Sequence record: ON286972.1 | Strand: one strand, 5' to 3' | Length of the DNA: 64,000 nt | Position numbers and translations under genes: made by a program | Shown: one piece after another, positions 25,311-43,676 of the stretch | Layout: every line of letters begins with the position of its first letter | Numbering within the stretch: the first letter of the stretch is position 1 | Notes under the pieces: model-generated | What the model was told of the DNA's origin: nothing | What the model saw: only the letters and a program-made list of their open reading frames with translations | Database searches by the model: none

Positions 25311-25479
25311 AAAAATGAACCAATACCTTATAACCCCAGTGATAATAACGACCTGTTATTATAACTTAGGGCAACTAGGGGCGGGTAATTGCTTAGCTCG
25401 TGTGAAGGGGTTCGTGGGTGGGACAAAAATGTTTCGTATGCTATAATCATATCGAATATGAACATAGCTAGGAGACACT

Positions 25480-27879: not shown

Positions 27880-28081
27880 TGGGTATGAATATTACAGTCT
27901 GTTGCGAACTATACAAGCAAAAGTTTCTAGTATTTCTTTAGACAAATCTATTGCACAAGTGGACAAATGTGTTATAATAACTGAAATGAAGCTATCTATC
28001 TTCATTGGGACAAACTATCAAAGCATCTACACTGACGCATGGTTAGCAAGTCTACGTAACAAGGTGATATCCAGAGAATGA
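27866..28081 (+). CDS. LGTNYQ family B protein
   Basis: IGTNYQ. Confidence 0.8.
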   Translation: MKILSGYEYYSLLRTIQAKVSSISLDKSIAQVDKCVIITEMKLSIFIGTNYQSIYTDAWLASLRNKVISRE

Positions 28082-28296
28082 AAAAATTACAAGGTTTTGA
28101 ATATATTAAGCTTCTTCAAACCTGTGAAATCCAAAGAAGAAAGATTCAAAAGGCTAAAAGAATTACCGCAGAACGAAAGTTTACACTGATAACTGAAGTC
28201 TATGTATTAAAACTCTTAGGCACAAACCATCAACACAAGTATGTAGACCTATGGATTGATGCACTCCAGAAAGAGGTTAAAAGTAAATGCAAATGA
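28078..28296 (+). CDS. LGTNYQ family B protein
   Basis: LGTNHQ. Confidence 0.8.
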   Translation: MKKLQGFEYIKLLQTCEIQRRKIQKAKRITAERKFTLITEVYVLKLLGTNHQHKYVDLWIDALQKEVKSKCK

Positions 28297-28511
28297 TTAA
28301 TTTAAGTAAAGATGAATATTATGTACGTCTTGCAAAAACTTATTCATTACGCAAGGCCATTTATGAAAGTCACATTATTGAACAATCAAATAAGTGGATT
28401 GTAGTAAATGAGATCAAGATGCTTTCAGTCTTAGGAACAAACTATCAAGCGAGTGCTGTACTGAAGGTCATTAATGCACTTCAAAATGAGGTCCAAAGTA
28501 AATGCAAATGA
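28287..28511 (+). CDS. LGTNYQ family B protein
   Basis: LGTNYQ. Confidence 0.8.
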   Translation: MQMINLSKDEYYVRLAKTYSLRKAIYESHIIEQSNKWIVVNEIKMLSVLGTNYQASAVLKVINALQNEVQSKCK

Positions 28512-28765
28512 TTAATTTAAGTAAAGATGAATATAACGAGCGACTAGCAAAAATCTCACCTAAACGTAATGCAATCTATCACAGCCAAGAAATTCAACAC
28601 AGTAAGAAGATGATTATGTTTCGTGAGTTAAAGATGGGTGTCTTCTTAGGAACAAACTATCAAGAGACAGAAGTAAATCGCGTCATAACCGAGTTACTCA
28701 TGGAAATCAGAGGTAAGCTGTACTTTCATCAAATGACCCAACCACTGAGGTGTAATGAGAAATGA
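28502..28765 (+). CDS. LGTNYQ family B protein
   Basis: LGTNYQ; first 11 aa identical to 28287. Confidence 0.8.
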   Translation: MQMINLSKDEYNERLAKISPKRNAIYHSQEIQHSKKMIMFRELKMGVFLGTNYQETEVNRVITELLMEIRGKLYFHQMTQPLRCNEK

Positions 28766-28998
28766 ATAAAATTAATAACATCAACTTAGCAGAAAGATTT
28801 GATAGAATTGGGGAAGCTCTGAGAAGATACGATAAAGCATATGGTCATTTAAGCTTTACCATAGAAACGAGATATGCCCTTGAAGAAGAGTTTAAAATGC
28901 ATAGTCTCTTAGGCACACAGTATCAAAAACAATATGTTCAAAAATGGATTGAATGTTTAATCCAAACAATTCATGTGAGGAACATAAAATGCAAATGA
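28762..28998 (+). CDS. LGTNYQ family B protein
   Basis: LGTQYQ. Confidence 0.8.
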   Translation: MNKINNINLAERFDRIGEALRRYDKAYGHLSFTIETRYALEEEFKMHSLLGTQYQKQYVQKWIECLIQTIHVRNIKCK

Positions 28999-29243
28999 TA
29001 TACTTAACAGACGATGAAATAAAAGAAAGAATAATTAAATCCAGAAAACATACAAATCAACTTCCAAAAGACCCAAACCAAACCCCTGCTGCAAGGAGTG
29101 CAGAAGTATTATATCAACAACTCCTGTACTTTCTTGGAACTGATAGACAGGATTATTATGTTCGATCGATTCTTAGATATCTTAAAATGACTATTCAGGA
29201 AAAGATACATGACCAAATATATAAAAATCTTAACAGTCAATGA
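28989..29243 (+). CDS. LGTNYQ family B protein
   Basis: LGTDRQ; start adjusted. Confidence 0.75.
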   Translation: MQMIYLTDDEIKERIIKSRKHTNQLPKDPNQTPAARSAEVLYQQLLYFLGTDRQDYYVRSILRYLKMTIQEKIHDQIYKNLNSQ

Positions 29244-29460
29244 ATATCATAAGATTATCATGAAGACTAATAGTGCAATTTCTAAAAAATCAAACCCCAA
29301 GTACATTCTGGAACACACATTTGAAGAACGACAATTAGCTTTAGTTGAAGCAAAACTTCTTGCACTATTAGGGACTAACTATCAAGACGAGTACGTAAGA
29401 AAACTAATATACCTTTTAACTAAACACATCAGGAAAAGAAATGCTGCACTTGACAAATGA
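29209..29460 (+). CDS. LGTNYQ family B protein
   Basis: LGTNYQ. Confidence 0.8.
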   Translation: MTKYIKILTVNEYHKIIMKTNSAISKKSNPKYILEHTFEERQLALVEAKLLALLGTNYQDEYVRKLIYLLTKHIRKRNAALDK

Positions 29461-29671
29461 CGAATACGGTGTTATCATCCTTGATGTTATCAATAAAGAA
29501 TACCATAGGAAACAACGATACGCTTGTTATGAAGATAAACAGCTTTCTATAGCTGAACAACAATTAGTTCATTTATTAGGAACAAACTATCAAGAACAAT
29601 GCACTGAACGTTACCTGTACCTACTGTCGAGGAAAGCAAAAAGAGATTATGAAAATTTTAAACGAAGGTGA
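29441..29671 (+). CDS. LGTNYQ family B protein
   Basis: LGTNYQ. Confidence 0.8.
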   Translation: MLHLTNDEYGVIILDVINKEYHRKQRYACYEDKQLSIAEQQLVHLLGTNYQEQCTERYLYLLSRKAKRDYENFKRR

Positions 29672-29864
29672 TGAAGTAATATTACTTATAGAGAATTCAA
29701 GTAAATTCTTAAACATATCACTGTCTGATATAGATGAAGATGACAAAGAAGTACTGAGAGCAGATTTAAGAGTACTGTTACATCTCGGAACAAACCTACA
29801 AGAACAATTTGTTGAGGACTACATCGATGAACTTAAAGAATCAGTACTGAGAAGATGTAAATGA
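29649..29864 (+). CDS. LGTNYQ family B protein
   Basis: LGTNLQ. Confidence 0.8.
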   Translation: MKILNEGDEVILLIENSSKFLNISLSDIDEDDKEVLRADLRVLLHLGTNLQEQFVEDYIDELKESVLRRCK

Positions 29865-30103
29865 AAATGAAAATCCTTTCAAGCACAGAATACAACCAAC
29901 TATTAAGTAGTTTAATTCCAAAGTTGCATCGTAGCTGGTCAGCAGAATTATCACAGGATGAAAAAAATATTCTAATAAGTGAAATCTATGTTCTAGCTAC
30001 TATAGGAACTAACTATCAAGAACACATCATAGTGGATTATATTAATACACTCAAAAGGGTAATACAATTAAAATGCACAGACAGCACATACACAAACCCC
30101 TAG
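29861..30103 (+). CDS. LGTNYQ family B protein
   Basis: IGTNYQ. Confidence 0.8.
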   Translation: MKMKILSSTEYNQLLSSLIPKLHRSWSAELSQDEKNILISEIYVLATIGTNYQEHIIVDYINTLKRVIQLKCTDSTYTNP

Positions 30104-30303
30104 GAACAGCAGAATACATTGAACTAATGGCAGCAAACTTCTCATCCTTTCAGAAACTGAGGCAAGAATCAAATAATGATTTAGAATATCATATCAAAAG
30201 TTCAGATTTAAGATTGTTACTCACTCTAGGAACAGACAGTCAGTACAAATTCGTACAGGAGCATATTAGAGCACTTTTAAATGGCATCAGGAATAAACTA
30301 TGA
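30073..30303 (+). CDS. LGTNYQ family B protein
   Basis: LGTDSQ. Confidence 0.75.
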   Translation: MHRQHIHKPLGTAEYIELMAANFSSFQKLRQESNNDLEYHIKSSDLRLLLTLGTDSQYKFVQEHIRALLNGIRNKL

Positions 30304-30515
30304 AGGAAATATCAAACCAAGAGTACTTAGAACTATTCAGAAAAAATAAGAACGAATATATGGCACTTGATACAAGAACTGATATAGGGGAACTTGAAAA
30401 AAATCTTTTGCGTTCAGAGATGATAGTACTGACACTCTTAGGAACACAGCACCAAGAGAGAACTGTTAATTCACACATAGAAATACTTAAGAAGCTTATA
30501 CAGGAAAAGATATGA
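30300..30515 (+). CDS. LGTNYQ family B protein
   Basis: LGTQHQ. Confidence 0.8.
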   Translation: MKEISNQEYLELFRKNKNEYMALDTRTDIGELEKNLLRSEMIVLTLLGTQHQERTVNSHIEILKKLIQEKI

Positions 30516-30733
30516 GAATCATAACACAACAAGATATTCTTAAGTTCACAAGGGTTCATGCATCTGAATTTGATGCTATATTATCAAAAAGTTACAACAA
30601 CCCTTATACAGAAGATGTACACTACAGTGAATTATGGGTGTATATACTTTTAGGTACAGATCATCAAGAGCAAGCAGTACAGAAGTATTTGTTAGCTTTA
30701 CGTGATGCTACTGCTAATGGAGTAGGTGTTTAA
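30512..30733 (+). CDS. LGTNYQ family B protein
   Basis: LGTDHQ. Confidence 0.8.
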   Translation: MRIITQQDILKFTRVHASEFDAILSKSYNNPYTEDVHYSELWVYILLGTDHQEQAVQKYLLALRDATANGVGV

Positions 30734-30735
30734 AA

Positions 30736-31077
30736 ATGAAAACTAATATTCAACTCAAGGTATACATATCGTATGAAAATATATACATCAAAAGTAGTCT
30801 ATGTAAAGATGTAATGGACTACAAAGGTAAGCCATTCACAGTTACTTACAGTTCTACAGGAGGTTTATATATATCTTTTGCTAATTACGAAAATAATATG
30901 TACGAACACATTGACATTGAAGATTTAAGTACTTTATCAGAAGAGGAATACTTTCAGGAATCATTAGTCTGGGATTTAGAGTTTCCTATGCCATTAGTAC
31001 ATAAAATGATAGTACTAATAAAAGAAACTAAACAGGAGCCTCGTGATAATTATGAAGAACACATTATTGAGTATTAA
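30736..31077 (+). CDS. FQxS family C protein
   Basis: LSEEEYFQESLVWD. Confidence 0.8.
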   Translation: MKTNIQLKVYISYENIYIKSSLCKDVMDYKGKPFTVTYSSTGGLYISFANYENNMYEHIDIEDLSTLSEEEYFQESLVWDLEFPMPLVHKMIVLIKETKQEPRDNYEEHIIEY

Positions 31078-31089
31078 GAGTACTGAACC

Positions 31090-31320
31090 ATGAAAAGATT
31101 ATCATTCGAAGAGTACTGCAAGCTTATTAATACTTTACAACCACAAATACAACAAATAAATTCTCTTCCTATACCCCAAGAAGAACGTGCAGTACTGAAA
31201 GATGAGTTAATTTTAAAATGCACAGTAGGTACTAACTATCAAGCTGATAGTGTTCGTTATCTAATTTGGGGTTTAATGTGCATAATAGAGAACAAAGCAG
31301 TTGACAGTACTCTAATGTAG
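31090..31320 (+). CDS. LGTNYQ family B protein
   Basis: VGTNYQ. Confidence 0.8.
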   Translation: MKRLSFEEYCKLINTLQPQIQQINSLPIPQEERAVLKDELILKCTVGTNYQADSVRYLIWGLMCIIENKAVDSTLM

Positions 31321-31329
31321 TGCTATAGT
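31301..31329 (+). promoter_or_regulatory. sigma70-type promoter at the start of the ACT-free block
   Basis: TTGACA-17-TATAGT with TGn extension. Confidence 0.75.
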
Positions 31330-31359
31330 ACTTCTACGTTCTAATATAGGGTACAGATT

Positions 31360-31605
31360 ATGTTAAAATTTTTAAATTTCCTTATCGTCTTGTGTATTGT
31401 TCTTGGGATTGCACCGTTTGTATTAGCGTATCTGGATTCAGATGAAATGCACAAGATGAATTGCACAAAGACAGGACAGAGTAGAAAAGAGACGGTTATG
31501 ATGCCCGTAACGGTTATTGTGAATAATATGCCGATTACGAACATGATTCCTACCCTAACGACAACGTATCAGTACTCTTGCGATGACGGAGAGAGGTGGA
31601 GATGA
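31360..31605 (+). CDS. membrane-anchored protein with two Cys
   Basis: N-terminal TM; C.KTG...YSCDDG. Confidence 0.8.
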   Translation: MLKFLNFLIVLCIVLGIAPFVLAYLDSDEMHKMNCTKTGQSRKETVMMPVTVIVNNMPITNMIPTLTTTYQYSCDDGERWR

Positions 31606-31931
31606 CACGTAAATTCAATTGTATTGTCAGAGATAAAATCTGTTTCATTGCGTTGTCCAATTTCCAGAGCAATTCTGGGGTTAAGGTATTTGAGTACAAT
31701 AAAGTTGATAATTGTTTCTATTGGGTAGACGGTGTAAAATCCACAGGAAACAAGATTGCAGTACCGAATCTAGTTGATATCTCTGAAGAAGAAGAGTTTC
31801 AGTACAGTTTAGTACATGATGATTCTTTTGGATTTACGTTCAATGAAATGAAGGAAGTACAAAGGCAGATGATATCGTATAGTAATCTTCCAAAGCATTT
31901 CATACAAGATGTGCATAGAATTGTAATATAG
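31596..31931 (+). CDS. FQxS family C protein
   Basis: SEEEEFQYSLVHD. Confidence 0.8.
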   Translation: MEMTRKFNCIVRDKICFIALSNFQSNSGVKVFEYNKVDNCFYWVDGVKSTGNKIAVPNLVDISEEEEFQYSLVHDDSFGFTFNEMKEVQRQMISYSNLPKHFIQDVHRIVI

Positions 31932-31938
31932 GGGATAT

Positions 31939-32274
31939 ATGAAATTCAACATTCACCGAATTAATTCCGGTTGTATATTTGCTTATACGCATGAGAATTA
32001 CAAGAAGTACATGAATCATGAAGTACATTATGTTTTCGAGGACGGTAAAGAATATTTTGCTTATTTGAGTCCCAGGAGTTTAGGTAAGTACGAGTTGCTT
32101 CAGGATCTTTCTCTTATGCAGGAAGATGAATTATTTCAGTACAGTCTAATTCATGACCCTTATATGTTTGATATAGATATTATGTGCAGTTTACAGAAGA
32201 GGATGAAAGAAGTTTGGGATTCGATTAAAAGAGGTGATTGTATAGAATATGATAGTATACAAGAAGATGCCTAA
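31939..32274 (+). CDS. FQxS family C protein
   Basis: EDELFQYSLIHD. Confidence 0.8.
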   Translation: MKFNIHRINSGCIFAYTHENYKKYMNHEVHYVFEDGKEYFAYLSPRSLGKYELLQDLSLMQEDELFQYSLIHDPYMFDIDIMCSLQKRMKEVWDSIKRGDCIEYDSIQEDA

Positions 32275-32467
32275 CGGATATGAATTGAAGTACAGACATT
32301 TTATTCGAAATGTAGAATCAGATCCTTTTAATGTTAAAATGGCAGAGTTCGATTTATTATTTTATCTAGGAACGAGAGCACAGCCACAATTCGTTGATGC
32401 ATACATAAGGGCTTTACGAACAGAGATAGTATGCACACCAAAGGAGTCTAAATGTACAAAAATGTAA
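32267..32467 (+). CDS. LGTNYQ family B protein
   Basis: LGTRAQ; start adjusted. Confidence 0.75.
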   Translation: MPNGYELKYRHFIRNVESDPFNVKMAEFDLLFYLGTRAQPQFVDAYIRALRTEIVCTPKESKCTKM

Positions 32468-32709
32468 ACCATCATTTGTACGCATCAAAGTACAGGGATT
32501 TTTGTTTACAAGGGGGCGATGAAGATTTTGCTTTGCGATTATCGGAATTTAATATGTTATTTTATCTTGGTACATCAGTACAAGAAGAAATGGTACAGAA
32601 ATTTATCAAGCACCTTGAACGAAAAATTCATACGCAAATTTTGGTTGTTAAGTTACAGAATGAGATAAATGAATACAATGCAGAATCTAACAGTAGTACA
32701 GGATCTTAG
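32452..32709 (+). CDS. LGTNYQ family B protein
   Basis: LGTSVQ; SD AAGGAG. Confidence 0.8.
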   Translation: MYKNVNHHLYASKYRDFCLQGGDEDFALRLSEFNMLFYLGTSVQEEMVQKFIKHLERKIHTQILVVKLQNEINEYNAESNSSTGS

Positions 32710-33070
32710 ACCAGTAATAATGATGTTAAATGCAAGACGAGATTTATGGCACGAAATGCATAACAACAAGGATTCATTTGCACAAATCAATTTAGTCTTT
32801 CAGGAGTTAATCCAGAGTGCATTGGATGTTATAGTACCAAAATACAAAGATGGTATATTCTGTGTAAAGAATGCAGTTCGTCCTCATGCAATTCCAAGGA
32901 AAATTAAGTTAGCCAGATTAACATTTGACGAGAGGGATTTCTTCAGTTATAATCCCAGTACAGCTTTATATTTTATTCCTGATTCAGACAAATATCATCC
33001 TATCCATTACGGATGGATTATGTCGTATGTAGTGAATGAAACGGAATACCCTATTAAATGGGAAAGATGA
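32669..33070 (+). CDS. hypothetical protein
   Basis: Tiled ORF in operon. Confidence 0.75.
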   Translation: MNTMQNLTVVQDLRPVIMMLNARRDLWHEMHNNKDSFAQINLVFQELIQSALDVIVPKYKDGIFCVKNAVRPHAIPRKIKLARLTFDERDFFSYNPSTALYFIPDSDKYHPIHYGWIMSYVVNETEYPIKWER

Positions 33071-33255
33071 TGATAGATGCAAAGACATTAAATGCATTAA
33101 ATGCATTACAGGATTCATTATTAGATAGTATTAAGCTGTATTACAATATGCATTTGAGGGGTGGTATCAATGATTACAATTATTATTTGAGTGTAATTAT
33201 ATTTGAGCATCTTTCAGTACAGGATAGAATTTTACACAAGTACAAACATTATTGA
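33058..33255 (+). CDS. hypothetical protein
   Basis: Tiled ORF in operon. Confidence 0.65.
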   Translation: MGKMMIDAKTLNALNALQDSLLDSIKLYYNMHLRGGINDYNYYLSVIIFEHLSVQDRILHKYKHY

Positions 33256-33266
33256 GGAAACAAAAT

Positions 33267-33617
33267 ATGTTCAATAAAATCATGTTCATTTTAACATTTG
33301 TGTTTTTATCATTTATAAACACCGCACATACAGCACAGGCATCATCGGATGTACCGTTATATGAAACATACAAATTTGATTGCAGATTACAGAATAATGA
33401 AATAATCAATATCTTTTTACACAATACAGAAGTACCTTATTTGCAGATTGAAGCAACGAAGTACATGTATTATGGTACGAATTCAGTACAGGAATTTTTA
33501 TTCAAACACACCAATCAGGATGTAATTATATCATTGCAGTACGTTGATAGTTCATTGTCTTTAATGCATTTCAAGAATGCAGAGGGATTAGTTACAGTGC
33601 TCAAATGCTATAGGTAA
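33267..33617 (+). CDS. exported protein
   Basis: Signal peptide MFNKIMFILTFVFLSFINTAHTAQA; SD GAGG. Confidence 0.75.
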   Translation: MFNKIMFILTFVFLSFINTAHTAQASSDVPLYETYKFDCRLQNNEIINIFLHNTEVPYLQIEATKYMYYGTNSVQEFLFKHTNQDVIISLQYVDSSLSLMHFKNAEGLVTVLKCYR

Positions 33618-33623
33618 TAATAT

Positions 33624-34139
33624 ATGAATGAAATTGAATTATTAACGCACAAGATTAGTACAATAATGCTTATGCTCAAAAATAATCATCCTATACATAA
33701 GTACATTGATATAGATGAATTACGCATAGAAGATAGGCATGGTAAATTATCGTTTATGTTTCACAATGCAAATAATGCAGGGAATGTTAACGTTTGTATT
33801 GCAGCATTTACCCAAGCCAATCCAGTACAAACATCTCCTGTTGTATACGAAAATAAAGAAGGGTATTTGTGGGTAAACACAAACGATTATTTCTTTTATG
33901 ATTTGAAACAAGATGATGAAGTAGAAGAACGAATTGATTTAATTGATATTAGTACAGATTGTAGTGCTGAATTATTTCAGAAATCGTTATTATATAGTCC
34001 TCGTCAAATGCATTATCTAAAGTTATTCAGTTCATTGTACGCGAATCCTTTAATTAAGGGTTTTAAATTTTATATAAAAGTTCCTGACATTCAAGCAGTT
34101 TATGATATTTTGATGCAAGGATATAGTTATGAAGTATAA
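33624..34139 (+). CDS. FQxS family C protein
   Basis: SAELFQKSLLY. Confidence 0.8.
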   Translation: MNEIELLTHKISTIMLMLKNNHPIHKYIDIDELRIEDRHGKLSFMFHNANNAGNVNVCIAAFTQANPVQTSPVVYENKEGYLWVNTNDYFFYDLKQDDEVEERIDLIDISTDCSAELFQKSLLYSPRQMHYLKLFSSLYANPLIKGFKFYIKVPDIQAVYDILMQGYSYEV

Positions 34140-34437
34140 AATGCTTTATACAAAAGATATGATTTATGTTGAATTAGAAGGCGATGAAGACGGTTGGAAT
34201 TTGATTTATTCAAGTAGTTCAGGTTGGTACATGGCACATTTAAATGATAACGAAGTTACAGATTATTTTGTAGATTTCAATACATTATCAGACGAAGAAT
34301 TGTTTCAACAGCAATTAGTGATTGACACGGGTGGTTATGATGTGTTATTATTAAAAAAGATACAGAAAGCTGTTATGAATTTTAATGCCCAAGTATCCGA
34401 ATGGGAAAGGAAATATTATGACCTCGAAGTACAATAA
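34129..34437 (+). CDS. FQxS family C protein
   Basis: SDEELFQQQLV. Confidence 0.8.
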   Translation: MKYKMLYTKDMIYVELEGDEDGWNLIYSSSSGWYMAHLNDNEVTDYFVDFNTLSDEELFQQQLVIDTGGYDVLLLKKIQKAVMNFNAQVSEWERKYYDLEVQ

Positions 34438-34786
34438 TACATTTGATATTAATAAGTTAACAGAATGGTTTTATAATATTGAAATTGAAGCTATTCCGTA
34501 TCACAAGTACGAACAACGTGATTTGCGTAGTATAGATATTCGTGAGTTGTACGAGTATTATCAGAGTGCATTAGAGATGCATAAGATATTTTTGAGTACA
34601 GAATACATGACACGTTGTAATGATGCGTTTGATGAATTCAAGAAGAATGATAATTTAGTACAGAAATATGTAATAGCAAAGTACATGTACCTTCAGGGAA
34701 TTACAAGTATAGTGGAATTCAATACAGTTCTTGCTTTAGTTGAGATTATTTTATTATGCAAAAATGTAAAGTGGAATTTAGTTTAG
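34418..34786 (+). CDS. hypothetical protein
   Basis: Start adjusted to ATG 34418. Confidence 0.7.
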   Translation: MTSKYNNTFDINKLTEWFYNIEIEAIPYHKYEQRDLRSIDIRELYEYYQSALEMHKIFLSTEYMTRCNDAFDEFKKNDNLVQKYVIAKYMYLQGITSIVEFNTVLALVEIILLCKNVKWNLV

Positions 34787-35253
34787 AGAGTGCTGTACAG
34801 TACGTTAAGTACATTGAAGGTGTATACAATATAATGAAAGCATATGAAGGAAAAGGATATGCTTCAATAAATCACAAATATGATTACATCAACAATCAGT
34901 TAGAAGAATCAAATTCAGGTAAAGTGCTTTTTAGTTTTTTATATTTTGCTCCTGACAATGTATATCCTGATGAAGATGATCTTCGTCTGGATAGAGATGA
35001 CCTGTGGTATATGTATCCAGGACGTGATAAGCCAATGGATGATGCTTTGTTGGAAATCAAATACAGTACAGAACCATTGACACCGGAGTTGTGGTTCCAG
35101 TACAGTACAATACATGAAGAAATTGATATCTTTTTCTACGCAATATACAAGATGCTTTATGAGAATGGTGTGCTTAAGAATCATGTATATTTTTATTTCC
35201 AGCAAATGAAAAATGTATATGAGTCCTTTTACCCAACCGAGCCTGTATCGTAA
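34756..35253 (+). CDS. FQxS family C protein
   Basis: PELWFQYSTIHE. Confidence 0.8.
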   Translation: MQKCKVEFSLESAVQYVKYIEGVYNIMKAYEGKGYASINHKYDYINNQLEESNSGKVLFSFLYFAPDNVYPDEDDLRLDRDDLWYMYPGRDKPMDDALLEIKYSTEPLTPELWFQYSTIHEEIDIFFYAIYKMLYENGVLKNHVYFYFQQMKNVYESFYPTEPVS

Positions 35254-35307
35254 GATATGGGCTTTTTTCGTTTTGGTATTGACATAGAAGACCAAAGCTG
35301 TTATCAT
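35240..35307 (+). promoter_or_regulatory. terminator hairpin followed by sigma70 promoter
   Basis: GCCTGTATC-GTAA-GATATGGGC-TTTTTT; TTGACA-17-TATCAT. Confidence 0.7.
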
Positions 35308-35333
35308 GTGTATTCATTTTAAAGGAGACATTT

Positions 35334-35858
35334 ATGGCGAGTTTCATGATCCCAAGTACATACGAAGATGCATCAAGTGCAGTGTATAAGGTTCATTATA
35401 TTTTTAATTTAATTATTAGTGCATCAAAAAATAAAATGTATGCACCTCTTGTGAAATATGATAAAAATGAGGAAATTTTTGTTAGCACAGAACAAACGAT
35501 TTTTCCATATTTCAAAGAAGATAGATTGTGGTTCATGCATTCAGTCGTATTACAAAGATATAATATAACAAGGTCCAATGAGCATGATTATTTGGATATA
35601 CAATTAGATCAACCCGATATTGGAGAGGATGAATATTTTCAGTACAGCACAGTACACCACCATGAAGATATCTTTGCTGCTATGCTTATTGCTAAATTGA
35701 ACACCGTTGATTTGGAGCAGCACAAATACAATAATAAATCATGTAAGATCATAATCCCTGCATTCATTGCTCTTTATGATTACATTGTGCATAACAAAAA
35801 AGATGATACCTATGCTTTCAATGAAGAGTATTTGGATTTTTTTAAGGAGAACATATGA
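35334..35858 (+). CDS. FQxS family C protein
   Basis: EDEYFQYSTVHH; SD AAGGAG. Confidence 0.85.
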   Translation: MASFMIPSTYEDASSAVYKVHYIFNLIISASKNKMYAPLVKYDKNEEIFVSTEQTIFPYFKEDRLWFMHSVVLQRYNITRSNEHDYLDIQLDQPDIGEDEYFQYSTVHHHEDIFAAMLIAKLNTVDLEQHKYNNKSCKIIIPAFIALYDYIVHNKKDDTYAFNEEYLDFFKENI

Positions 35859-36379
35859 GCAGTTCAACAATACAGAAAGCAATGACATTCAATGAAATTG
35901 GTGCATTTAAAGATAAGATTATTGATTGTATTGAATACGCGATTTGTAGTAATATCAAAAGTATAGAGGTATTTAACAAGTCAAATCGCTCTTACCATAT
36001 GATGTACATTGCAAACAATAATGGTATCATTCCATTTGTTTCGGATAGTACAATATGGTTCGCTTGCGATGTGAAAAAATACACAATAGGTTCATATGTC
36101 TTCGGTAAACATGGTGATCTAATTATTCCTGAGCATTGTATGCAAGAAGAAGAATATTTTCAAAAGCAATGTGTACATGAACCATTAGAGATGGTTGCTT
36201 TATATATGATACCTTATATCTCTAAATGTGTTCATGAGAATAAAGCTCCGTGGAATCATGAATTTGTATCGTTGAAGTTATTGTATAATGTTTTAGTACA
36301 ATATTATGATTACAGGCACAATGGTACAATCAGTGATGTATGGGATTTCGAAAATTTAAGGGTAAGTACATATGCATAA
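35855..36379 (+). CDS. FQxS family C protein
   Basis: EEEYFQKQCVHE. Confidence 0.8.
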   Translation: MSSSTIQKAMTFNEIGAFKDKIIDCIEYAICSNIKSIEVFNKSNRSYHMMYIANNNGIIPFVSDSTIWFACDVKKYTIGSYVFGKHGDLIIPEHCMQEEEYFQKQCVHEPLEMVALYMIPYISKCVHENKAPWNHEFVSLKLLYNVLVQYYDYRHNGTISDVWDFENLRVSTYA

Positions 36380-37010
36380 TTTTCCCAGAAATGCTTCACC
36401 GTATGAGGTGATGAAGTTCATGGAGCCTCATGTTCCTTATATGTTTGAAATGCTAAAGAAGTTCAATGCTATTTTCCCTGAGAATTCAAAATTGGAGATT
36501 CCATTTGATTCCGCATCCAGATACAGTGCATCCTGTGGTAAATTAGTTTTAGTTATCGGTAGTGACAGAATTGGTTTCAGGGAAGTATTTGACACGTCAT
36601 TAGCATTTGGTATATTCGATAACAACAATAACATCACATACATTGACAAGTACATTTGCGACATAGCAGGTTCCTCTAAGCCTGATTCCTTTGTGGATTC
36701 AGTTGCAGATTATGGTGTTTCAAAAGATGGTAATGTAATAAGTACAAAGACGTTCATATCATTATCGTTAGAAGATGACATATGTTACATTGCAGGTCAA
36801 GAGTACGAGGGTGTAGAGGAAGTGCTTTTTCAAATGTCCTTAGTACAGAAGGATATGGTGGACCCTACCGAAATCCTGAAGTTGTGCAAATATGCGAATG
36901 AGTACAAGAAATTGATTGAACCTGGGTTTAGTTTCAGTGCACAGAGTCCACATTTTCAGATAAAAGTATATGAAGATTTCATTTTGAAGTTAAAAGAGAT
37001 TGTGTTATAA
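36372..37010 (+). CDS. FQxS family C protein
   Basis: EEVLFQMSLV. Confidence 0.8.
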   Translation: MHNFPRNASPYEVMKFMEPHVPYMFEMLKKFNAIFPENSKLEIPFDSASRYSASCGKLVLVIGSDRIGFREVFDTSLAFGIFDNNNNITYIDKYICDIAGSSKPDSFVDSVADYGVSKDGNVISTKTFISLSLEDDICYIAGQEYEGVEEVLFQMSLVQKDMVDPTEILKLCKYANEYKKLIEPGFSFSAQSPHFQIKVYEDFILKLKEIVL

Positions 37011-37053
37011 TACGCTATAACATGCAATAACACACAATACAACAAAGACGGGA

Positions 37054-37599
37054 GTGATTGATATGATCCAGCACAAACATTTTGAGTACGAGTTCGCTGA
37101 CAATTTAGTAAAAATCGTACAGGCGTTTGAGGCTGGGGATTTTGACCACATCTATCCTAAGCACAAGGAAGGATGGCTTGAGCCTAAGAGCGATATTGAA
37201 CAGTATCCCTCTATTGTGTATTACAGGAGAGATACGGTAATGCACGCTGTAGGTGAGAAGATGCAGTTAGAGTATTGTCTTTTGTTCAATGCTATTACAT
37301 CGGCTACATCAGCATCTGAAGAGTTCGCTCCAGTGAATTGGATTCGTTATTTGGATATGAGCAAGAGAGAGGAAGAAACCTTTTTTGGTTTAACAAAGCA
37401 CGTTGATATTGCAACCTTAAATCCTAACATCCTGAGTCCTGAAGAATATTTTCAGGAGTCCTTAGTACAAGATCCTTATGTTTTACAGGTGCAGCAAGTA
37501 TATAATGTATTACGTGCTAATGTGAAAACGAATTTCTTTTTAGCTTTAACGTGGTACGATAGGTTAGTAAAAGATCTCAAAGAGATTAAGGGGGAGTAA
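37054..37599 (+). CDS. FQxS family C protein
   Basis: PEEYFQESLVQD; start may be 37063. Confidence 0.8.
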   Translation: MIDMIQHKHFEYEFADNLVKIVQAFEAGDFDHIYPKHKEGWLEPKSDIEQYPSIVYYRRDTVMHAVGEKMQLEYCLLFNAITSATSASEEFAPVNWIRYLDMSKREEETFFGLTKHVDIATLNPNILSPEEYFQESLVQDPYVLQVQQVYNVLRANVKTNFFLALTWYDRLVKDLKEIKGE

Positions 37600-38165
37600 T
37601 GCTGGACCTTCAGGACATAGAAAGTACATGCAAAGTGATAGAAGATGATTTAGAATACATCAAGGGGTTGTATTTAATTGTAGATAGGATTTACAAAAAT
37701 CCGAATGCGTTTCAGGAAACGTACCAGCATGATAAATTTCGTCACGATGCAATCATTACGCTTATGTCGGATTTATCGATTTACGAAAGAAAATCCAACA
37801 AATCACATAGTGTATTATTTGTGAGTACAGATAGATTTTACAGTACAACATCAATTTGTTCAGATGTATCATGTGCATGGTTCAGTTCAAATGAATATAT
37901 AACAGTTAAAAATAATGGCGAAAATGAGAAATTAAAAGTAAGTGAGCTTATTGATTTGATGCCATATAGTCCTGATGTAGTGTTTCAGTACAGTACATTG
38001 CACGATTATAATTCAATACGATATCGTTATTTTGTTAAGCATTATTATGATACCTTCGGGGAGTTAACGGAGAAGTTAACGTTGAGATTTGACAGAGATA
38101 TCGATCTCGTTGCATTGAATCAGTACCTTCAGGAAGTGTTTGATATAAACGCGGAAAAGGGGTAA
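37599..38165 (+). CDS. FQxS family C protein
   Basis: PDVVFQYSTLHD. Confidence 0.8.
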   Translation: MLDLQDIESTCKVIEDDLEYIKGLYLIVDRIYKNPNAFQETYQHDKFRHDAIITLMSDLSIYERKSNKSHSVLFVSTDRFYSTTSICSDVSCAWFSSNEYITVKNNGENEKLKVSELIDLMPYSPDVVFQYSTLHDYNSIRYRYFVKHYYDTFGELTEKLTLRFDRDIDLVALNQYLQEVFDINAEKG

Positions 38166-38240
38166 TTTTAAAATGATAAATATAGGCTTGTTTTTGGGGG
38201 CGTTTTGGGGGGTCAAAAAAATTTTCGCTGAAAAACATGT

Positions 38241-38262
38241 NNNNNNNNNNNNNNNNNNNNNN
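38241..38262. other. assembly gap (22 N) with low-complexity flanks
   Basis: N-run; homopolymer-rich flanks at 38165-38340 look like low-quality sequence. Confidence 0.95.
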
Positions 38263-38379
38263 ATTTTATATTGTGTTTTTCAGAGTACAGTTCATGTTTC
38301 CTTAAACAAAAAATACCCCCCGCCGCCGAACGTGCTCCTTATATTGGAGTTTACCTTATTAATTATAGTAGAGGTTATT

Positions 38380-38736
38380 ATGAGCAATGATTTTGCTATT
38401 CACAGTTTTTTCTACAAAAAGGTTGAGTTCTATTGTAATCTCGTTAAGGGTGATACCAATCATTCGTTGGACCAATATATTAAGTACACCTCAAATGGAT
38501 TTTCTTTTGTTGATTACGGTCGAGTTGGTGGTGGTGTTAATGAACCTATGCTGGACTATACAGAAATGGATGAGGCTACTCTATTTCAGGAATCATTAGT
38601 GTTCGATAAGAAATATATTTGTACACTAGATGAAGTTATTGGTATTCAGAATATCATGAAAGAATACTCTGCGAAGTGCATGATGGAATTAACTCAAGAT
38701 AAGCACAAGACTGTTCAGTGCTATTTCAATCTTTAG
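38380..38736 (+). CDS. FQxS family C protein
   Basis: SD GAGG at ATG 38380; DEATLFQESLVFD. Confidence 0.8.
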   Translation: MSNDFAIHSFFYKKVEFYCNLVKGDTNHSLDQYIKYTSNGFSFVDYGRVGGGVNEPMLDYTEMDEATLFQESLVFDKKYICTLDEVIGIQNIMKEYSAKCMMELTQDKHKTVQCYFNL

Positions 38737-38747: not shown

Positions 38748-39092
38748 ATGACATACAATGAATACCGTGAAATAGATCTTCTCCAGAATACATTATATGA
38801 AATTGAAGATTTAATGCACGGATGGACAAGTCTTTCTTTCTTTAATGAAATGTTCGAAGAAATAAAAGTAGTACTACAGAAAAAACATAATGGTACTAAA
38901 ATTAAAATAAAGACTTTCACTGGAGAAGTCTGGTGCGGAGAAATTGTGAAATACATTATAACTCGCAATAACGCATCATTCTGTTTGAATACTGGTCATT
39001 ACAGAAATCATTTCAACAATAGCAGTACTCAAGTTATTTCCGAGGAAGAATACAATGAGCACTGTAATAAACTTCTTAAGAGTAGATTCTAA
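38748..39092 (+). CDS. hypothetical protein
   Basis: SD AGGGG; start adjusted. Confidence 0.75.
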   Translation: MTYNEYREIDLLQNTLYEIEDLMHGWTSLSFFNEMFEEIKVVLQKKHNGTKIKIKTFTGEVWCGEIVKYIITRNNASFCLNTGHYRNHFNNSSTQVISEEEYNEHCNKLLKSRF

Positions 39093-39418
39093 TGAATACT
39101 AAAATATATGTTTCTTCAAGTACAATGGGAAGTGGTTTTACTTATACGTGCTTTTTTACTACATTGAATAAAACACCTATATTGATTATTCGTGATTTCA
39201 ATGAATGTAATATTGAGTACGTATCCAAAACAGATAAGCTTCCTAATTACATCGAATGTGAATACATGGAGAACTATGAAAGTTTTATATTTCAGGAATC
39301 ATTAGTATGGGATAAAGAAATCGATTTCTTTATGTACCTTGCATTACAAAAGTACTACAGAGATAACAAGGACAAAATAGTTCGTTCTTGCATTTATTCT
39401 ATTAATCTGGAGTACTGA
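39092..39418 (+). CDS. FQxS family C protein
   Basis: ESFIFQESLVWD. Confidence 0.8.
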   Translation: MNTKIYVSSSTMGSGFTYTCFFTTLNKTPILIIRDFNECNIEYVSKTDKLPNYIECEYMENYESFIFQESLVWDKEIDFFMYLALQKYYRDNKDKIVRSCIYSINLEY

Positions 39419-39588
39419 TGCTTAAAAAAGAACAAATGGAATCATTAATGAATGCAGTTATTCGTCGTTTTGTTAAAGACATTAGTCATAAAAACTGTAT
39501 TACAAATGACAGGTACGGTATAGAATTGTATATAGCTAATATTCACATGGCGTACAGAGAATATATTAAGACACGTCACAGGGGTTGA
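39418..39588 (+). CDS. small hypothetical protein (56 aa)
   Basis: TGATG overlap; translated by hand. Confidence 0.65.
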   Translation: MLKKEQMESLMNAVIRRFVKDISHKNCITNDRYGIELYIANIHMAYREYIKTRHRG

Positions 39589-39589
39589 A

Positions 39590-40072
39590 ATGAGTTTAGA
39601 AAGTGCATTGAAAGAAGCAAAGAAGATTCATGAGTACATGAATATGGCAAAAGAAGGTTCAGTTTACGGTATTTTCAAAGACACAAGTACTCAATATTAT
39701 GTCTCTGATAACCTCATTGATAATGACTTCCCAGATACAGAAACGTGCGTACTAGATACCGACCCTAATGATTATGAATGTTTCATTGATATGCATAATG
39801 AGTACATGGTCTATGTTAATGATGGAGATATTACCATCTACAGTACTGTCCACGATACCGATGACATTATAATTCCGTGTGCAGTACTGGATGGTCCTTG
39901 GGATAGTGAAGAGTATTACTTCCAACAAAGTACTGTATACAATGAAGAAGAACTTGATTGTATTGTAATTATGTGGTACTTTAAAAGTATTGGTTCTGAG
40001 AACTTCTATTTCGATTACAGATACGTAAAGAAAACTGTAGATAACGGTATTAATAAACTTCACAGGGGTTGA
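39590..40072 (+). CDS. FQxS family C, MSLESA subfamily
   Basis: VLDGPWDSEEYYFQQSTVY. Confidence 0.85.
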   Translation: MSLESALKEAKKIHEYMNMAKEGSVYGIFKDTSTQYYVSDNLIDNDFPDTETCVLDTDPNDYECFIDMHNEYMVYVNDGDITIYSTVHDTDDIIIPCAVLDGPWDSEEYYFQQSTVYNEEELDCIVIMWYFKSIGSENFYFDYRYVKKTVDNGINKLHRG

Positions 40073-40073
40073 A

Positions 40074-40544
40074 ATGAGTTTAGAAAGAGCATTAGAGATT
40101 GCGAAGTTAATTGATTTATGCAGCAAAGAAATTGTATCAAATTGTCTCAATGGATATCTATTCAAGGAAGGTAAATCATATTGTCGAATGATATACGATG
40201 ACAGTAGTGAATATATTCATATGTATGAAGAAAATTTAGATTCTTCTGAAACAACACTCATTGGATGTGATGTTAATTTGGAAGATAATTACATGTACTT
40301 CTGTCGTGATGCTGATATTTTAATCCAAGATTCATTTATTCAAACAGGTGCACCAGAGGTATATATTCCGTATTCAGTACTGGATAATGACTGGGGAAGT
40401 GAAGAGTTCTACTTCCAGCAGAATACTATCTACGAGGAAGATGTGCTTGACAAGCTTGTCATTCTGTGGTACTTTAACAACACTGATTGTCCTAGCTTCT
40501 ATATGGACTTGGATCTATTACGAGTTATAAAAGAGGATATATGA
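40074..40544 (+). CDS. FQxS family C, MSLESA subfamily
   Basis: VLDNDWGSEEFYFQQNTIY. Confidence 0.85.
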   Translation: MSLERALEIAKLIDLCSKEIVSNCLNGYLFKEGKSYCRMIYDDSSEYIHMYEENLDSSETTLIGCDVNLEDNYMYFCRDADILIQDSFIQTGAPEVYIPYSVLDNDWGSEEFYFQQNTIYEEDVLDKLVILWYFNNTDCPSFYMDLDLLRVIKEDI

Positions 40545-40984
40545 GTTTAGTAAGTGCACTTGAACTGGCACACAAAATACATCACTTCCACGATAACATA
40601 AAAAGTGGGTTCTATGGTGATAAAGTAAGTGCTTTTGGTAATGAGTATTATCTATCAGGTATAAAGACATACTCTGCTGATATTTTACTTATGGGTCATG
40701 ATAAAGACAATACTATACAGTACTCTTCATGTAGTCAATATACTAGTTTTATGGTATATATTCCAGGTACTAAGATTACTTTTGACACATCAAATTCACC
40801 TGTTGACTTCGGGGTACTTGATGGCCCGTGGGGTACTGAAGAGTATTACTTCCAACAGAGTCTCATTTTTAACCAAGAAATGCTTGATTCCTTGGTTGTG
40901 TTGTGGTACTTTAAGGAATTGAATTTTGAACCATTCTTTCTTGACTGGGGAGCATGTGAATATTTAAGTACAGGGGATTTGTAA
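40541..40984 (+). CDS. FQxS family C, MSLESA subfamily
   Basis: VLDGPWGTEEYYFQQSLIF. Confidence 0.85.
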   Translation: MSLVSALELAHKIHHFHDNIKSGFYGDKVSAFGNEYYLSGIKTYSADILLMGHDKDNTIQYSSCSQYTSFMVYIPGTKITFDTSNSPVDFGVLDGPWGTEEYYFQQSLIFNQEMLDSLVVLWYFKELNFEPFFLDWGACEYLSTGDL

Positions 40985-41439
40985 TGTCGTTACAAAGTGC
41001 ATTGAAAGAAGCAAAGAAGATTCATGAGTACATGATTAAGGTCAAAGGTGGAGAAATTCCAGGTATCTTCAAAATGTCAGAGACTGAATATTGCACGAAG
41101 AATATTGAGGATTTTGATGGTTCTGATACATTAGTACTGCAATGTGATGATTATGATCATGATAATTGTGGTTATAACCCTTTGTACTACTTTATCAATT
41201 ACTACCCAGGGTCAGATATAACCGTATACAACCCTGATTATTATGCTAAAGATTTGACAATTCCGTTTTCAGTACTGGATGGTCCGTGGGATAGTGAAGA
41301 GTATTACTTTCAGCAAAGTACTGTATATACTGAACATGAACTCGATACTCTGGTCATTATGTGGTACTTTAAAAGTATAGATTCAACATGTTTCTATATG
41401 GATTATGAATACATAGAGACACAGAAATATAAGAGGTAA
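40984..41439 (+). CDS. FQxS family C, MSLESA subfamily
   Basis: VLDGPWDSEEYYFQQSTVY. Confidence 0.85.
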   Translation: MSLQSALKEAKKIHEYMIKVKGGEIPGIFKMSETEYCTKNIEDFDGSDTLVLQCDDYDHDNCGYNPLYYFINYYPGSDITVYNPDYYAKDLTIPFSVLDGPWDSEEYYFQQSTVYTEHELDTLVIMWYFKSIDSTCFYMDYEYIETQKYKR

Positions 41440-41444
41440 TTGTA

Positions 41445-41891
41445 ATGTTTTTTTATTATTATGAAGTAAATGATAAGTTGGTTCAGGATATTGTACAAAT
41501 AATCAAGTACTTCAATGATAATCCTAACGTATTGGGTAGTGAGCTTGAATACGAGAAAGGTGGGTGTGTATATTTTACTTTCTGTGGTGGGTGCTCGGAA
41601 GAGCAATCATTTTTCAATTCTTATTCAAATTACATCTCCTATAATGCACTTGCAGACGAGTTGATTGTGGTACGTGACAGTAGTGATGACCGTACAGTGT
41701 ATACCAGAGAGACAATACAAAGTGTAGGTAATGAAGAAGGATACTTTCAATTGAGTACAGTACTGAATCATGAAGAACTACATGTATTACGTTTGTTTTA
41801 TCTTATTAGTACTATGAACTTGAAGCACGATCAGGTATACATTGATTTAGATTACTTTGAGTACTTACGTAAGATTAGTTCTAAAAAATAA
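41445..41891 (+). CDS. FQxS family C protein
   Basis: EEGYFQLSTV. Confidence 0.8.
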   Translation: MFFYYYEVNDKLVQDIVQIIKYFNDNPNVLGSELEYEKGGCVYFTFCGGCSEEQSFFNSYSNYISYNALADELIVVRDSSDDRTVYTRETIQSVGNEEGYFQLSTVLNHEELHVLRLFYLISTMNLKHDQVYIDLDYFEYLRKISSKK

Positions 41892-41901
41892 GTTCATGCT
41901 A

Positions 41902-41929
41902 TTGACAAGAGCCTGTACTGTGTTACAAT
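41902..41929 (+). promoter_or_regulatory. sigma70-type promoter
   Basis: TTGACA-16-TACAAT with TGn. Confidence 0.65.
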
Positions 41930-41963
41930 GCACAGTAATATTAATTAAAAAGGTGCACATGAA

Positions 41964-42497
41964 ATGATTATTAATGCTTACAATGCTGAGGAAATGCAGG
42001 AATTATCTCGTAAAATCAACATTATAGTTCCTTTGCTTAAGGATTGCAGTACTGGTTTGATTCCATCACGAGACATTATTAAAGAAGGATACTACCTACA
42101 GGCAGTCTATAAGGGTGGTACATTTCATCGTTGTCGTGTATTACGTGATGGCCTTCCTGCACTTACACTCATTGGTATTGGTATTGCCGTATGCGGTACG
42201 AACCGTTTGTACTTGAATGAAAAAAATCAAATCATGAATTTGTTTTATACAGGAAAAAGTACTGAATTATATTTTGGTATTCAGAACTGGTGGGATACCG
42301 TAAAGAGTAGTACTATTGAAATCCCGAAATACAATTACAACTCATTTGAAGAGCAGATGTTTCAATTGTCATGTACTGATGACATGTACATGATTCTACG
42401 TCTCTATATGGAGATGCAAATGAACTTCAGAAGTAATTTATACATTGATACTTCAACATTTGAATTCGAAGATGTATTCGTTGATGGTATATTATGA
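41964..42497 (+). CDS. FQxS family C protein
   Basis: EEQMFQLS. Confidence 0.8.
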   Translation: MIINAYNAEEMQELSRKINIIVPLLKDCSTGLIPSRDIIKEGYYLQAVYKGGTFHRCRVLRDGLPALTLIGIGIAVCGTNRLYLNEKNQIMNLFYTGKSTELYFGIQNWWDTVKSSTIEIPKYNYNSFEEQMFQLSCTDDMYMILRLYMEMQMNFRSNLYIDTSTFEFEDVFVDGIL

Positions 42498-42721
42498 AGT
42501 ATATTCCAAAACACCAGTACTACAGGATGTGTTCTGACATTTACACAAAATGGAATACATTTCATCCCCTTTTGAAGAAGAGGCGTCCATATCATGATTA
42601 TAAGTTGAATCATTTTCTTGGAACTAATTATCAAGAGGTTGTAATGAAAGATTACATTTTTAACCTTCAGAAATTAATTCAGAATAAAGTTCAAGGAAAG
42701 GGGGAGTCCACGTGGGTATAA
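42494..42721 (+). CDS. LGTNYQ family B protein
   Basis: FLGTNYQE. Confidence 0.8.
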   Translation: MKYIPKHQYYRMCSDIYTKWNTFHPLLKKRRPYHDYKLNHFLGTNYQEVVMKDYIFNLQKLIQNKVQGKGESTWV

Positions 42722-42918
42722 GACACAGAGACATGCAAGATATTCTTAACCAATACAGTGCTCAAATGTTCACTGCAATCAGGTCTTCCAATCAAAATGA
42801 CGTGTCGGAATTACAGTTACTGATGTACATAGGGACACAATACCAGGAGGCTTCAGTTGAGACGTATATTAAGTACCTATTGGGTATTATAAGGATGAAA
42901 AATGGACAATACTTTTGA
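42712..42918 (+). CDS. LGTNYQ family B protein
   Basis: IGTQYQE; GTG start. Confidence 0.75.
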   Translation: MGIRHRDMQDILNQYSAQMFTAIRSSNQNDVSELQLLMYIGTQYQEASVETYIKYLLGIIRMKNGQYF

Positions 42919-43138
42919 ACAAGCACCAGCATCGGATTTTAGTTATGGGTTTATTATAGATATATTTTCTGGTACTGAAGCATCTGATATACCTCTTTAT
43001 ATCTTTGCTAATATGCGTTATATTTTTCGTATTGCAGAGGACAGTGATAAATCTGATATGTCTTTTATGATTAAAAAAATCATATACTTATCGTGCTATG
43101 AATATATGAATGAAATGAGCGAACACTATGACCTATGA
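42902..43138 (+). CDS. hypothetical protein
   Basis: Tiled ORF. Confidence 0.7.
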   Translation: MDNTFEQAPASDFSYGFIIDIFSGTEASDIPLYIFANMRYIFRIAEDSDKSDMSFMIKKIIYLSCYEYMNEMSEHYDL

Positions 43139-43676
43139 TGAGATAATTTCTTTTGCAAATAAGTTAAGTACACTAACCAAATTGACGGAAGTAGTACTGC
43201 AAGATGAGCGTATACTTTCTAGGAGTGAGCTAATTGTTTCACAAAACGATTCCATGACGTATATGTCTTTCAGATCGTCAGGCCGAACAATTATTAAGTT
43301 CGGTTCTGTTCCTGAAACAAATGGAAAATTATCTATGTGCACACATAATAATGGGGAATTGTATGGATTAGTGTACAGAAAAGATTCGACAGTACTGAAT
43401 ACTTTCAATGCAGGTGCGAGTGCAGTTGATGTTACATCATTGAGTGATGTTGACAAATACATAGATTTACCACACCTTGAAATTAATGAAGAAAGTGTTT
43501 TTCAGTTAAGTACAGTGCACAATGATATTGAAGTGTTTGGTATTTCTTTATGGAATATCCTTCGTTTAAGGGATGATGCTCCTGTATTTGTATATGCAAA
43601 TTATGAAGACATTGATACTTGTATTGATGAAATGGAGAAATACATTGATCAATTTAAACAAAACTTCCACATTTGA
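43128..43676 (+). CDS. FQxS family C protein
   Basis: EESVFQLSTVH. Confidence 0.8.
   Translation: MTYDEIISFANKLSTLTKLTEVVLQDERILSRSELIVSQNDSMTYMSFRSSGRTIIKFGSVPETNGKLSMCTHNNGELYGLVYRKDSTVLNTFNAGASAVDVTSLSDVDKYIDLPHLEINEESVFQLSTVHNDIEVFGISLWNILRLRDDAPVFVYANYEDIDTCIDEMEKYIDQFKQNFHI

Follow-up and report, generated by a model that had tools for sequence, protein, structure and literature searches.

Why should one strand of a multi-gene block in a phage genome be almost empty of a single trinucleotide, ACT, that is common on the same strand to either side of it? The question is raised by positions 31333-38554 of a 64,000-nucleotide (nt) stretch of DNA, here called the window, which comprises bases 1-64000 of Escherichia phage A4 (ON286972, 355,528 bp, Asteriusvirus), a giant (jumbo) phage of the RaK2-like clade with E. 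coli LF82 as its host. Window and record coordinates are identical, and genome-wide counts were taken over the full 355,528-bp public record. An initial annotation, made from the letters of the window, had read this ACT desert as the footprint of an ACU-specific RNase. Our analyses confirm that the avoidance in the block is real, strand-specific, frame-independent and restricted to ACT.

The ACT desert and its conservation in related phages

The plus strand of the window carries 1,313 ACT, at a density of ~23 per kb outside the block. Within the 7,222-nt sense strand of 31333-38554, of which 22 letters are masked, a single ACT remains, at 31574, whereas 109 would be expected from the block's own base composition and 155 from the density in the flanks; the initial count of one against about 100 is thus borne out. 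The ACT-free interval from 31574 to 38555 spans 6,981 nt, whereas the next largest gaps measure 504 nt genome-wide and 292 nt within the window, and it is unique across the A4 genome, where ~1e-55 gaps of this size would be expected. Seen from the preceding dinucleotide, T follows AC in 1 of 332 cases inside the block and in 1,692 of 4,779 (35%) in the flanks. The reverse complement AGT occurs 176 times in the block, which is normal, so that no equal depletion of both strands is seen, and ACA, ACG and ACC are likewise normal (desert-to-outside ratios of 1.28 for ACA, 1.03 for ACG and, for comparison, 1.00 for GCU). No second avoided word was detected among the other 3-mers or among 4-mers that do not contain ACT, and minor dips in the block (CTA, CTG, AAC and similar) concern words that neighbour ACT. 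ACT encodes none of the 91 threonines in the block, compared to 46% of threonine codons outside, and frames +1 and +2 and the intergenic DNA are equally empty, in agreement with the initial view that the effect is independent of frame. Elsewhere in the A4 genome we found no AGT desert and no comparable desert for any trinucleotide on either strand. The GC content of the block resembles that of its flanks, and its GC skew (0.16-0.20) is among the highest in the window.

ACT is exactly the outer half of AGTACT, the most frequent hexamer in all six genomes compared (A4 and five other RaK2-like jumbo phages, covering four host genera), each of which holds 748-1,072 copies where ~120 are expected, an excess of about 8-fold. 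Within the window, 272 copies lie outside the block. The palindrome is present in all frames and in intergenic DNA, has symmetric flanks with C before and G after (CAGTACTG, 224 copies), is frequent in the spacers of early sigma70-type promoters and is densest at 0-30 kb; examples lie at 12058, 15854, 16453, 31306 and 31327. Inside the block there is one AGTACT against 46 AGTACA, 6 AGTACG and 4 AGTACC, which is the swap that the initial annotation had noticed. AGTAC itself is as dense in the desert as elsewhere (7.9 per kb compared to 6.3 per kb outside) and only the last T is altered, so that two pressures meet here, one for the palindrome and another against plus-strand ACT. A SlmA site was considered as the source of AGTACT and rejected, with no full sites found and different flanks. 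Our literature search did not find either AGTACT or an ACT desert described in these phages, and both the desert and the AGTACT excess appear to be unreported so far.

Several explanations can be ruled out. Codon usage or tRNA supply does not account for the desert, as all frames and the intergenic DNA are affected and the phage tRNA-Thr carries UGU. Avoidance of a type II restriction site is incompatible with a normal AGT count, an effect on one strand and an AGTACT that is enriched, not avoided. Mutational bias is excluded by the sharp edges, the retained AGTACA and the normal divergence of the block. Finally, the block is native and neither foreign nor mis-assembled: its GC content and AGTAC density are flank-like, paralogs exist both inside and outside it, and seven independent Asteriusvirus assemblies carry the same block.

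We compared A4 with slurp01, 121Q, PBECO4, Ecwhy_1, SD-15_S21, Sharanji, ph0011, fENko-Kae01, K64-1 and BF. Deserts are found at the same place in slurp01 (8,212 nt), 121Q (7,511 nt), PBECO4 (7,620 nt), Ecwhy_1 (7,839 nt), the Salmonella phage SD-15_S21 (7,212 nt) and Sharanji (7,649 nt), the last of which grows on MG1655. Only 40-50% of the block can be aligned with A4, with 14-24% mismatch, a divergence that equals that of the flanks, and the replaced genes in the relatives' blocks also obey the ban. At conserved AC sites in the block the third base differs 9-15 times per phage pair; these changes involve T in no case in slurp01, 121Q, PBECO4 and SD-15, once in Ecwhy_1 and three times in ph0011, compared to 33-52% of such changes in the flanks. 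As the block diverges like its flanks and yet T is nearly absent from the third-base changes after AC, this alignment evidence indicates that purifying selection against ACT in the block is strong and ongoing.

The desert is found in phages of E. coli, Salmonella and Klebsiella aerogenes, and it varies between lineages. In ph0011 it is leaky: ~7 kb hold 22 ACT, compared to an expectation of roughly 130-160. The distant Klebsiella phage fENko-Kae01 has a 2.4-kb mini-desert (23,619-26,008; 2 ACT where ~48 are expected, AGT normal) that covers four genes with no detectable similarity to A4 genes, which suggests that the desert tracks position and not genes. Whole-genome scans of K64-1 and of Serratia phage BF revealed no ACT desert, although both have the same AGTACT excess.

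The leaky genome also links the two signals. Relative to slurp01, ph0011 has lost 227 and gained 108 AGTACT, and relative to A4 it has lost 193 and gained 92, while losses and gains of control palindromes are balanced. Because the AGTACT excess and the ACT ban decay in parallel in ph0011, the comparison suggests one factor behind both. A sequencing artefact as the source of the ph0011 pattern was ruled out, since the genome is an Illumina assembly. As a separate observation, a third of the AGTACT losses in ph0011 (OP557969) are AGTTCT (50) or AGAACT (21), which looks more like a shift of the motif than like mere decay.

A location in the terminal repeat or at the entering end of the genome, as in phage T5, is ruled out by two relatives. 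The direct terminal repeat (DTR) of fEgEco12, whose genome ends were confirmed by digests, measures 20,993 bp and its desert lies at 28.5-37.2 kb; in fENko-Kae01 the DTR occupies 1-19,736 and the mini-desert 23.6-26.0 kb. The Sharanji record (OR545507, 1-8100) starts ~0.4 kb beyond the desert, which does not match the repeat positions of fEgEco12 and fENko-Kae01, and the published 20.7-kb repeat of Sharanji is probably not at the record start.

Edges and gene content of the block

The block contains 14 annotated coding sequences (CDS) and three unannotated open reading frames (ORFs), all on the plus strand, which matches the ~17 genes counted initially. Its features are listed below; all promoters and +1 sites in the block are predicted from sequence.

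31301-31329, plus strand: predicted sigma70-type promoter, TTGACA-17-TATAGT, TG-extended, with +1 at ~31336
31360-31605, plus strand: first gene, A4_336 (81 amino acids (aa), phrog_8826), which holds the sole ACT (31574)
31602-32274, plus strand: paralogous small genes A4_337 and A4_338 (phrog_13866/15629)
32249-32709, plus strand: two overlapping unannotated small ORFs of 72 and 85 aa (phrog_4148)
32669-35253, plus strand: seven ORFs with no assigned function (A4_339 to A4_344 and the unannotated 34385-34786)
32925-32953 and 34322-34351, plus strand: predicted internal sigma70-type promoters
35239-35264, plus strand: predicted intrinsic-terminator-like hairpin with T run
35279-35307, plus strand: predicted promoter after the hairpin, TTGACA-17-TATCAT
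35334-38165, plus strand: five ORFs of 174-212 aa, A4_345 to A4_349, with no Pfam or NCBIfam match
36589-36616, plus strand: predicted internal promoter
38166-38379, no strand assigned: conserved AT-rich intergenic region at the right edge, including an N gap (38241-38262)
38380-38736, plus strand: A4_350 (phrog_15629), whose first 175 nt lack ACT and which then has 7 ACT in 190 nt

The left edge coincides with a predicted transcription start, as initially claimed. In A4 and six Asteriusvirus relatives, ACT density is normal up to the -10 hexamer and near zero beyond it, and the same promoter (TTGACAGTACT...TATAGT) opens the desert in all seven of these genomes with a clean desert. The final ACTs upstream of the desert (31309 and 31330) are both associated with this promoter, whose -35 and -10 hexamers are overlapped by two AGTACT (31306 and 31327), and the second of these ACTs is followed by the predicted +1 at ~31336. 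The block holds four further near-consensus promoters and one terminator. Near-consensus promoters number 113 on the plus strand and 10 on the minus strand genome-wide, and this strong strand bias makes the promoter predictions meaningful. The sole ACT of the block sits in the full signature CAGTACT, ~30 nt before the stop codon of A4_336. In relatives, CAGTACT is retained at this position and also where the following one or two genes end. The first 750 nt of the clean deserts hold one to three residual ACT, almost all of them within a CAGTACT close to the end of one of the first genes.

Upstream of the desert, 28000-31320 forms a long tandem array of tiny (~70-80 aa) paralogous genes, and the two overlapping ORFs in 32249-32709 are ACT-stripped paralogs of such tiny upstream genes. 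The label 'DNA ligase' that the record gives to 37063-37599 is unsupported.

At the right edge, the intergenic region has G-rich and C-rich runs around an AT-rich centre that are conserved across genera, and it carries a new predicted promoter. Its cores TCAAAAAAATTTYCGCT and TATATTGGAGTTTA are common to A4 and fENko-Kae01, with counterparts of the region at L002:14486-14732, L016:25804-25966 and L018:21770-21900; the TATATTGGAGTTTA core occurs once in the A4 genome, and the intergenic core is present also in BF, a phage without a desert. We obtained no Rfam match and no significant RNA fold for the region, which could be a special promoter or an origin. Normal ACT density is back at 38555, past the N gap and inside A4_350, as noted initially. 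In relatives ACT returns 6 nt into the first gene past the intergenic region; that gene differs from A4_350, which looks chimeric for the ACT signal. The N gap lies in the spacer between the CDS end at 38165 and the CDS start at 38380, and no reading frame crosses it; a listed ORF at 38173-38736 is an artefact of N read as X. Conserved anchors around the gap are 24 letters apart in A4, 22 of them N, and the same 24 letters apart in five relatives, so that the two sides look continuous and colinear. This 24-letter interval is without ACT in all five relatives, and the masked letters could hide an ACT or so at most.

Directly after the ACT desert, 38972-45003 on the plus strand contains 6,031 nt without CGC, where ~3e-6 such gaps are expected, and shorter CGC, GCG or GCC gaps exist in the early regions of relatives. 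The CGC-free stretch may be the mere result of low GC content and paralog arrays.

A proposed factor acting on RNA and competing explanations

The reading that we favour most, though with a probability of only roughly 40%, is that the desert reflects an RNA-level factor, probably an ACU-cutting endoribonuclease, which the desert transcripts escape. In such a scheme the block would represent co-oriented early transcription units under host-type sigma70 promoters, and an endoribonuclease or a similar RNA-targeting enzyme, with ACU as its minimal site and AGUACU perhaps preferred, would cut ACU-rich host RNAs as well as most phage RNAs. The ~17 ACU-free cistrons would stay uncut and thus translatable while the enzyme is active, which would amount to a temporal exemption; we infer RNA as the target, a nuclease as the agent and this exemption as the purpose. 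The reading fits because the ban is strand-specific and frame-independent and extends to UTRs and intergenic spacers, the left edge lies at a predicted +1 in seven genomes, the right edge lies at a new predicted transcription unit and the ban is near-absolute. The ongoing selection and the mini-desert over unrelated genes in fENko-Kae01 also count in its favour. The near-total absence of ACT implies that a single site is harmful, as would be the case for cleavage of a polycistronic mRNA, and the few tolerated sites are 5'-proximal, where cleavage would do the least damage, which again fits an RNA model. Moreover, the joint decay of both signals in ph0011, in which the essential primase is conserved, fits the loss of a dispensable factor. 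The enzyme that we propose would more probably be a property of the phage clade than one particular toxin of E. coli. That RNAs avoid the short word of an RNase is an established principle, ACA and MazF being one example (PMC12151602).

Several points weigh against this reading. Outside the block the genome is rich in ACU and shows an actual excess of AGUACU, and an RNA model must therefore assume a timing or neutralisation step. The perfect palindrome AGTACT with its symmetric flanks points to DNA recognition and is left unexplained at the RNA level. The left edge of the fENko-Kae01 mini-desert is inside a gene, with no clear promoter. Domain scans found no nuclease signature in the desert genes or in the tested candidates among ~50 phage proteins, and neither these scans nor the literature yielded an ACU-specific RNase; of the initial proposal, the placement at the RNA level is in line with the edges and the near-absolute ban, while the enzyme itself was found neither in the phage nor in published work. 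A search of public RNA data returned no set with this phage. PhoH2, the product of A4_475 with its PIN-PhoH domain architecture, does not co-vary with the desert: mycobacterial PhoH2 has a reported preference for 5'-AC[A/U][A/U][G/C], but the gene is intact in all five genomes examined, including the leaky ph0011 and K64-1 and BF, which have no desert.

The search for the responsible factor nevertheless produced one lead. The desert ORFs, which the initial annotation took for possible inhibitors or antitoxins, are ORFans: Pfam and NCBIfam gave no match, their PHROGs families carry no assigned function and the ESM Atlas returned nothing. A phyletic screen yielded 20 genes that are common to desert-bearing phages and absent in K64-1 and BF, none of them nuclease-like. 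The genes lost in ph0011 are mostly mobile elements. A4_163 (record 311456-311884), a 142-aa ORFan, is syntenic in slurp01, fENko-Kae01, K64-1 and BF and is the only gene present in every AGTACT-rich genome but cleanly deleted from ph0011. The protein has polar residues that do not vary, and its confident AF2 model (pLDDT 82) gave no fold match in the PDB. We regard A4_163 as a candidate lead from a single lineage and nothing more.

Other A4 genes deserve mention for their own sake. The phage has an RNA-repair/processing kit (74706-77857, 99101-100540, 118284-119525 and 136686-137798) with a T4-type RNA ligase 1, a polynucleotide kinase/phosphatase, an RlaP-family nucleotidyltransferase, a CCA-adding-type enzyme and the PIN-PhoH protein. 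A4_120 (record 292647-294545) is a C-5 cytosine DNA methyltransferase split by an intein that carries a LAGLIDADG homing endonuclease domain. At 335978-339688, the 'endonuclease V' fragments A4_222 and A4_227 lie ~3 kb apart with A4_223 to A4_226 between them, part of which is missing in ph0011; the insert is probably a mobile insertion that splits denV.

The main rival, less likely but credible, is that the desert is an exclusion zone for primase sites. Known DnaG-type primases recognise a trinucleotide on the template whose 3' base is cryptic (GTT/GCT in T4, GTC in T7, CTG in E. coli), and the phage primase, which is of this type, might read 5'-ACT-3' in the same manner, the T at the 3' side being the cryptic base and pppGU the start of the primer. 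AGTACT would in that case supply a five-base primer template and the cryptic base for either strand at once, and the plus strand of the desert would lack start sites while the minus strand keeps strong ones (TGTACT), which would result in one-strand priming over 7 kb. Such an arrangement could control fork start beside the conserved AT-rich intergenic region, which the desert always abuts, or leave a long single-stranded stretch. A4 encodes a suitable enzyme in A4_45, a DnaG/TOPRIM-type primase (phrog_47, E 5e-33) that adjoins a DnaB-like helicase, and AGTAC is retained in the desert with its last T changed. A single factor would account for the palindrome with its symmetric flanks and for the strand-specific ban; by our own estimate, chance alone would make the outer half of the top hexamer the banned word in ~3-6% of cases. 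However, a zone of this kind has no precedent and no clear benefit, and, as only a minority of sites is used, weak selection per site would be predicted where the ban is in fact near-absolute. The left edge at a transcription start would be a coincidence, no mirror-image zone exists on the other strand, the primase remains conserved in ph0011 in spite of the decay of both signals there, and K64-1 and BF show the same AGTACT excess without a desert. Taking the evidence on palindrome and desert together, it is possible, and we hold it tentatively, that one factor of the RaK2-like clade that reads ACT on single strands, either a new ACU/AGUACU endoribonuclease or a primase, drives both the 8-fold AGTACT excess and the ACT ban.

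Two further readings seem improbable to us. Since the banned strand and its extent are those of the predicted transcript, another agent might act on single-stranded DNA, namely at ACT in the non-template strand where transcription or R-loops expose it; this agent might nick the strand, modify its bases (as an ADP-ribosyltransferase or a deaminase would) or be an enzyme that modifies DNA strand by strand. T4 endonuclease IV (TCA) and DarT (TNTC) are examples of enzymes with short single-strand contexts, and the GC skew of the block favours R-loops, but other heavily promoted early regions (10-24 kb) are ACT-rich, the ACT at 31330 is tolerated although it lies in DNA that would be melted in the open promoter, and no candidate enzyme is apparent. 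Equally, a toxin or defence RNase of the host that cuts ACU, with the block encoding counter-measures expressed during the attack, would share the sequence logic of the RNA model, and a desert that varies by lineage is what an arms race predicts. The sequence-specific E. coli toxins on record are MazF (ACA), ChpB (ACA/ACG/ACU) and MqsR (GCU), and none of them fits, because ACA, ACG and GCU are not depleted in the block, as the initial annotation had already held for these enzymes. The desert further spans phages of three host groups and is tied to AGTACT, a phage-clade trait on several host genera. The initial annotation had allowed for a host toxin or a phage-encoded timer; this multi-host, AGTACT-linked pattern disfavours an E. 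coli toxin. A clade-intrinsic factor is favoured because ACT is half of a clade-wide palindrome, because both signals decay jointly in ph0011 and because a Klebsiella phage has the desert over non-homologous genes. These three facts also keep the primase-site rival in play.

Implications and comparison with known systems

With near-zero sites where ~150 are expected, on one strand and through gene turnover, the desert is among the cleanest word-avoidance signals known to us. We regard it as a signal held for millions of years, and it nearly guarantees the existence of a hitherto unknown sequence-specific activity on single-stranded nucleic acid. If the factor is an RNase, it would be a new ACU-specific RNase, a tool like MazF in single-protein production, and the phage would run a cleavage-based temporal programme with one exempt operon. 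If it is a primase, this would be the first genome zone cleared of primase sites, with programmed one-strand-only priming. Either factor would represent a new principle of phage genome design, and finding it would account as well for the excess of AGTACT that is characteristic of an entire jumbo-phage clade now proposed for therapy.

Several known systems share individual traits with the desert. Primase recognition in T4 (gp61), T7 (gp4) and E. coli (DnaG) likewise depends on a strand-specific three-base word, and A4 encodes such a primase; we know, however, of no primase that uses ACT and of no genome in which a zone has been freed of such sites. Regional or strand-biased lack of a word that allows escape from a nuclease is seen in the first-step-transfer region of T5 and in the orientation of EcoP15I sites in T7, but the words concerned are 5-6 bp long and read on double-stranded DNA, and the A4 block is not at an entering end or in a terminal repeat. 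Mycobacterial PhoH2, with which A4_475 shares its domain architecture, has a reported preference that starts AC[A/U]; intact copies are present, however, in ph0011, K64-1 and BF, whose desert is leaky or absent. A possible analogy is provided by T4 RegB, a phage nuclease whose short target, GGAG in early mRNAs, shapes the temporal programme, as AGUACU in A4 is densest in the early region. None of the ~50 phage proteins scanned against Pfam matched the RegB family. To our knowledge, no target-free operon has been reported in T4, and RegB sites, in contrast to AGUACU, are not palindromic.

We likewise know of no enzyme with ACU-only specificity. The ban on ACU resembles the design of ACA-less mRNAs that withstand MazF, in that a short word is avoided on the sense strand in any frame and the RNA becomes immune to a sequence-specific endoribonuclease, and ACA is also under-represented in E. 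coli RNA phages (PMC12151602). In A4, by contrast, the word is ACU alone, and it is cleared from a 7-8 kb multi-gene block of a DNA phage that is otherwise rich in the word and carries it within a genome-wide palindrome.

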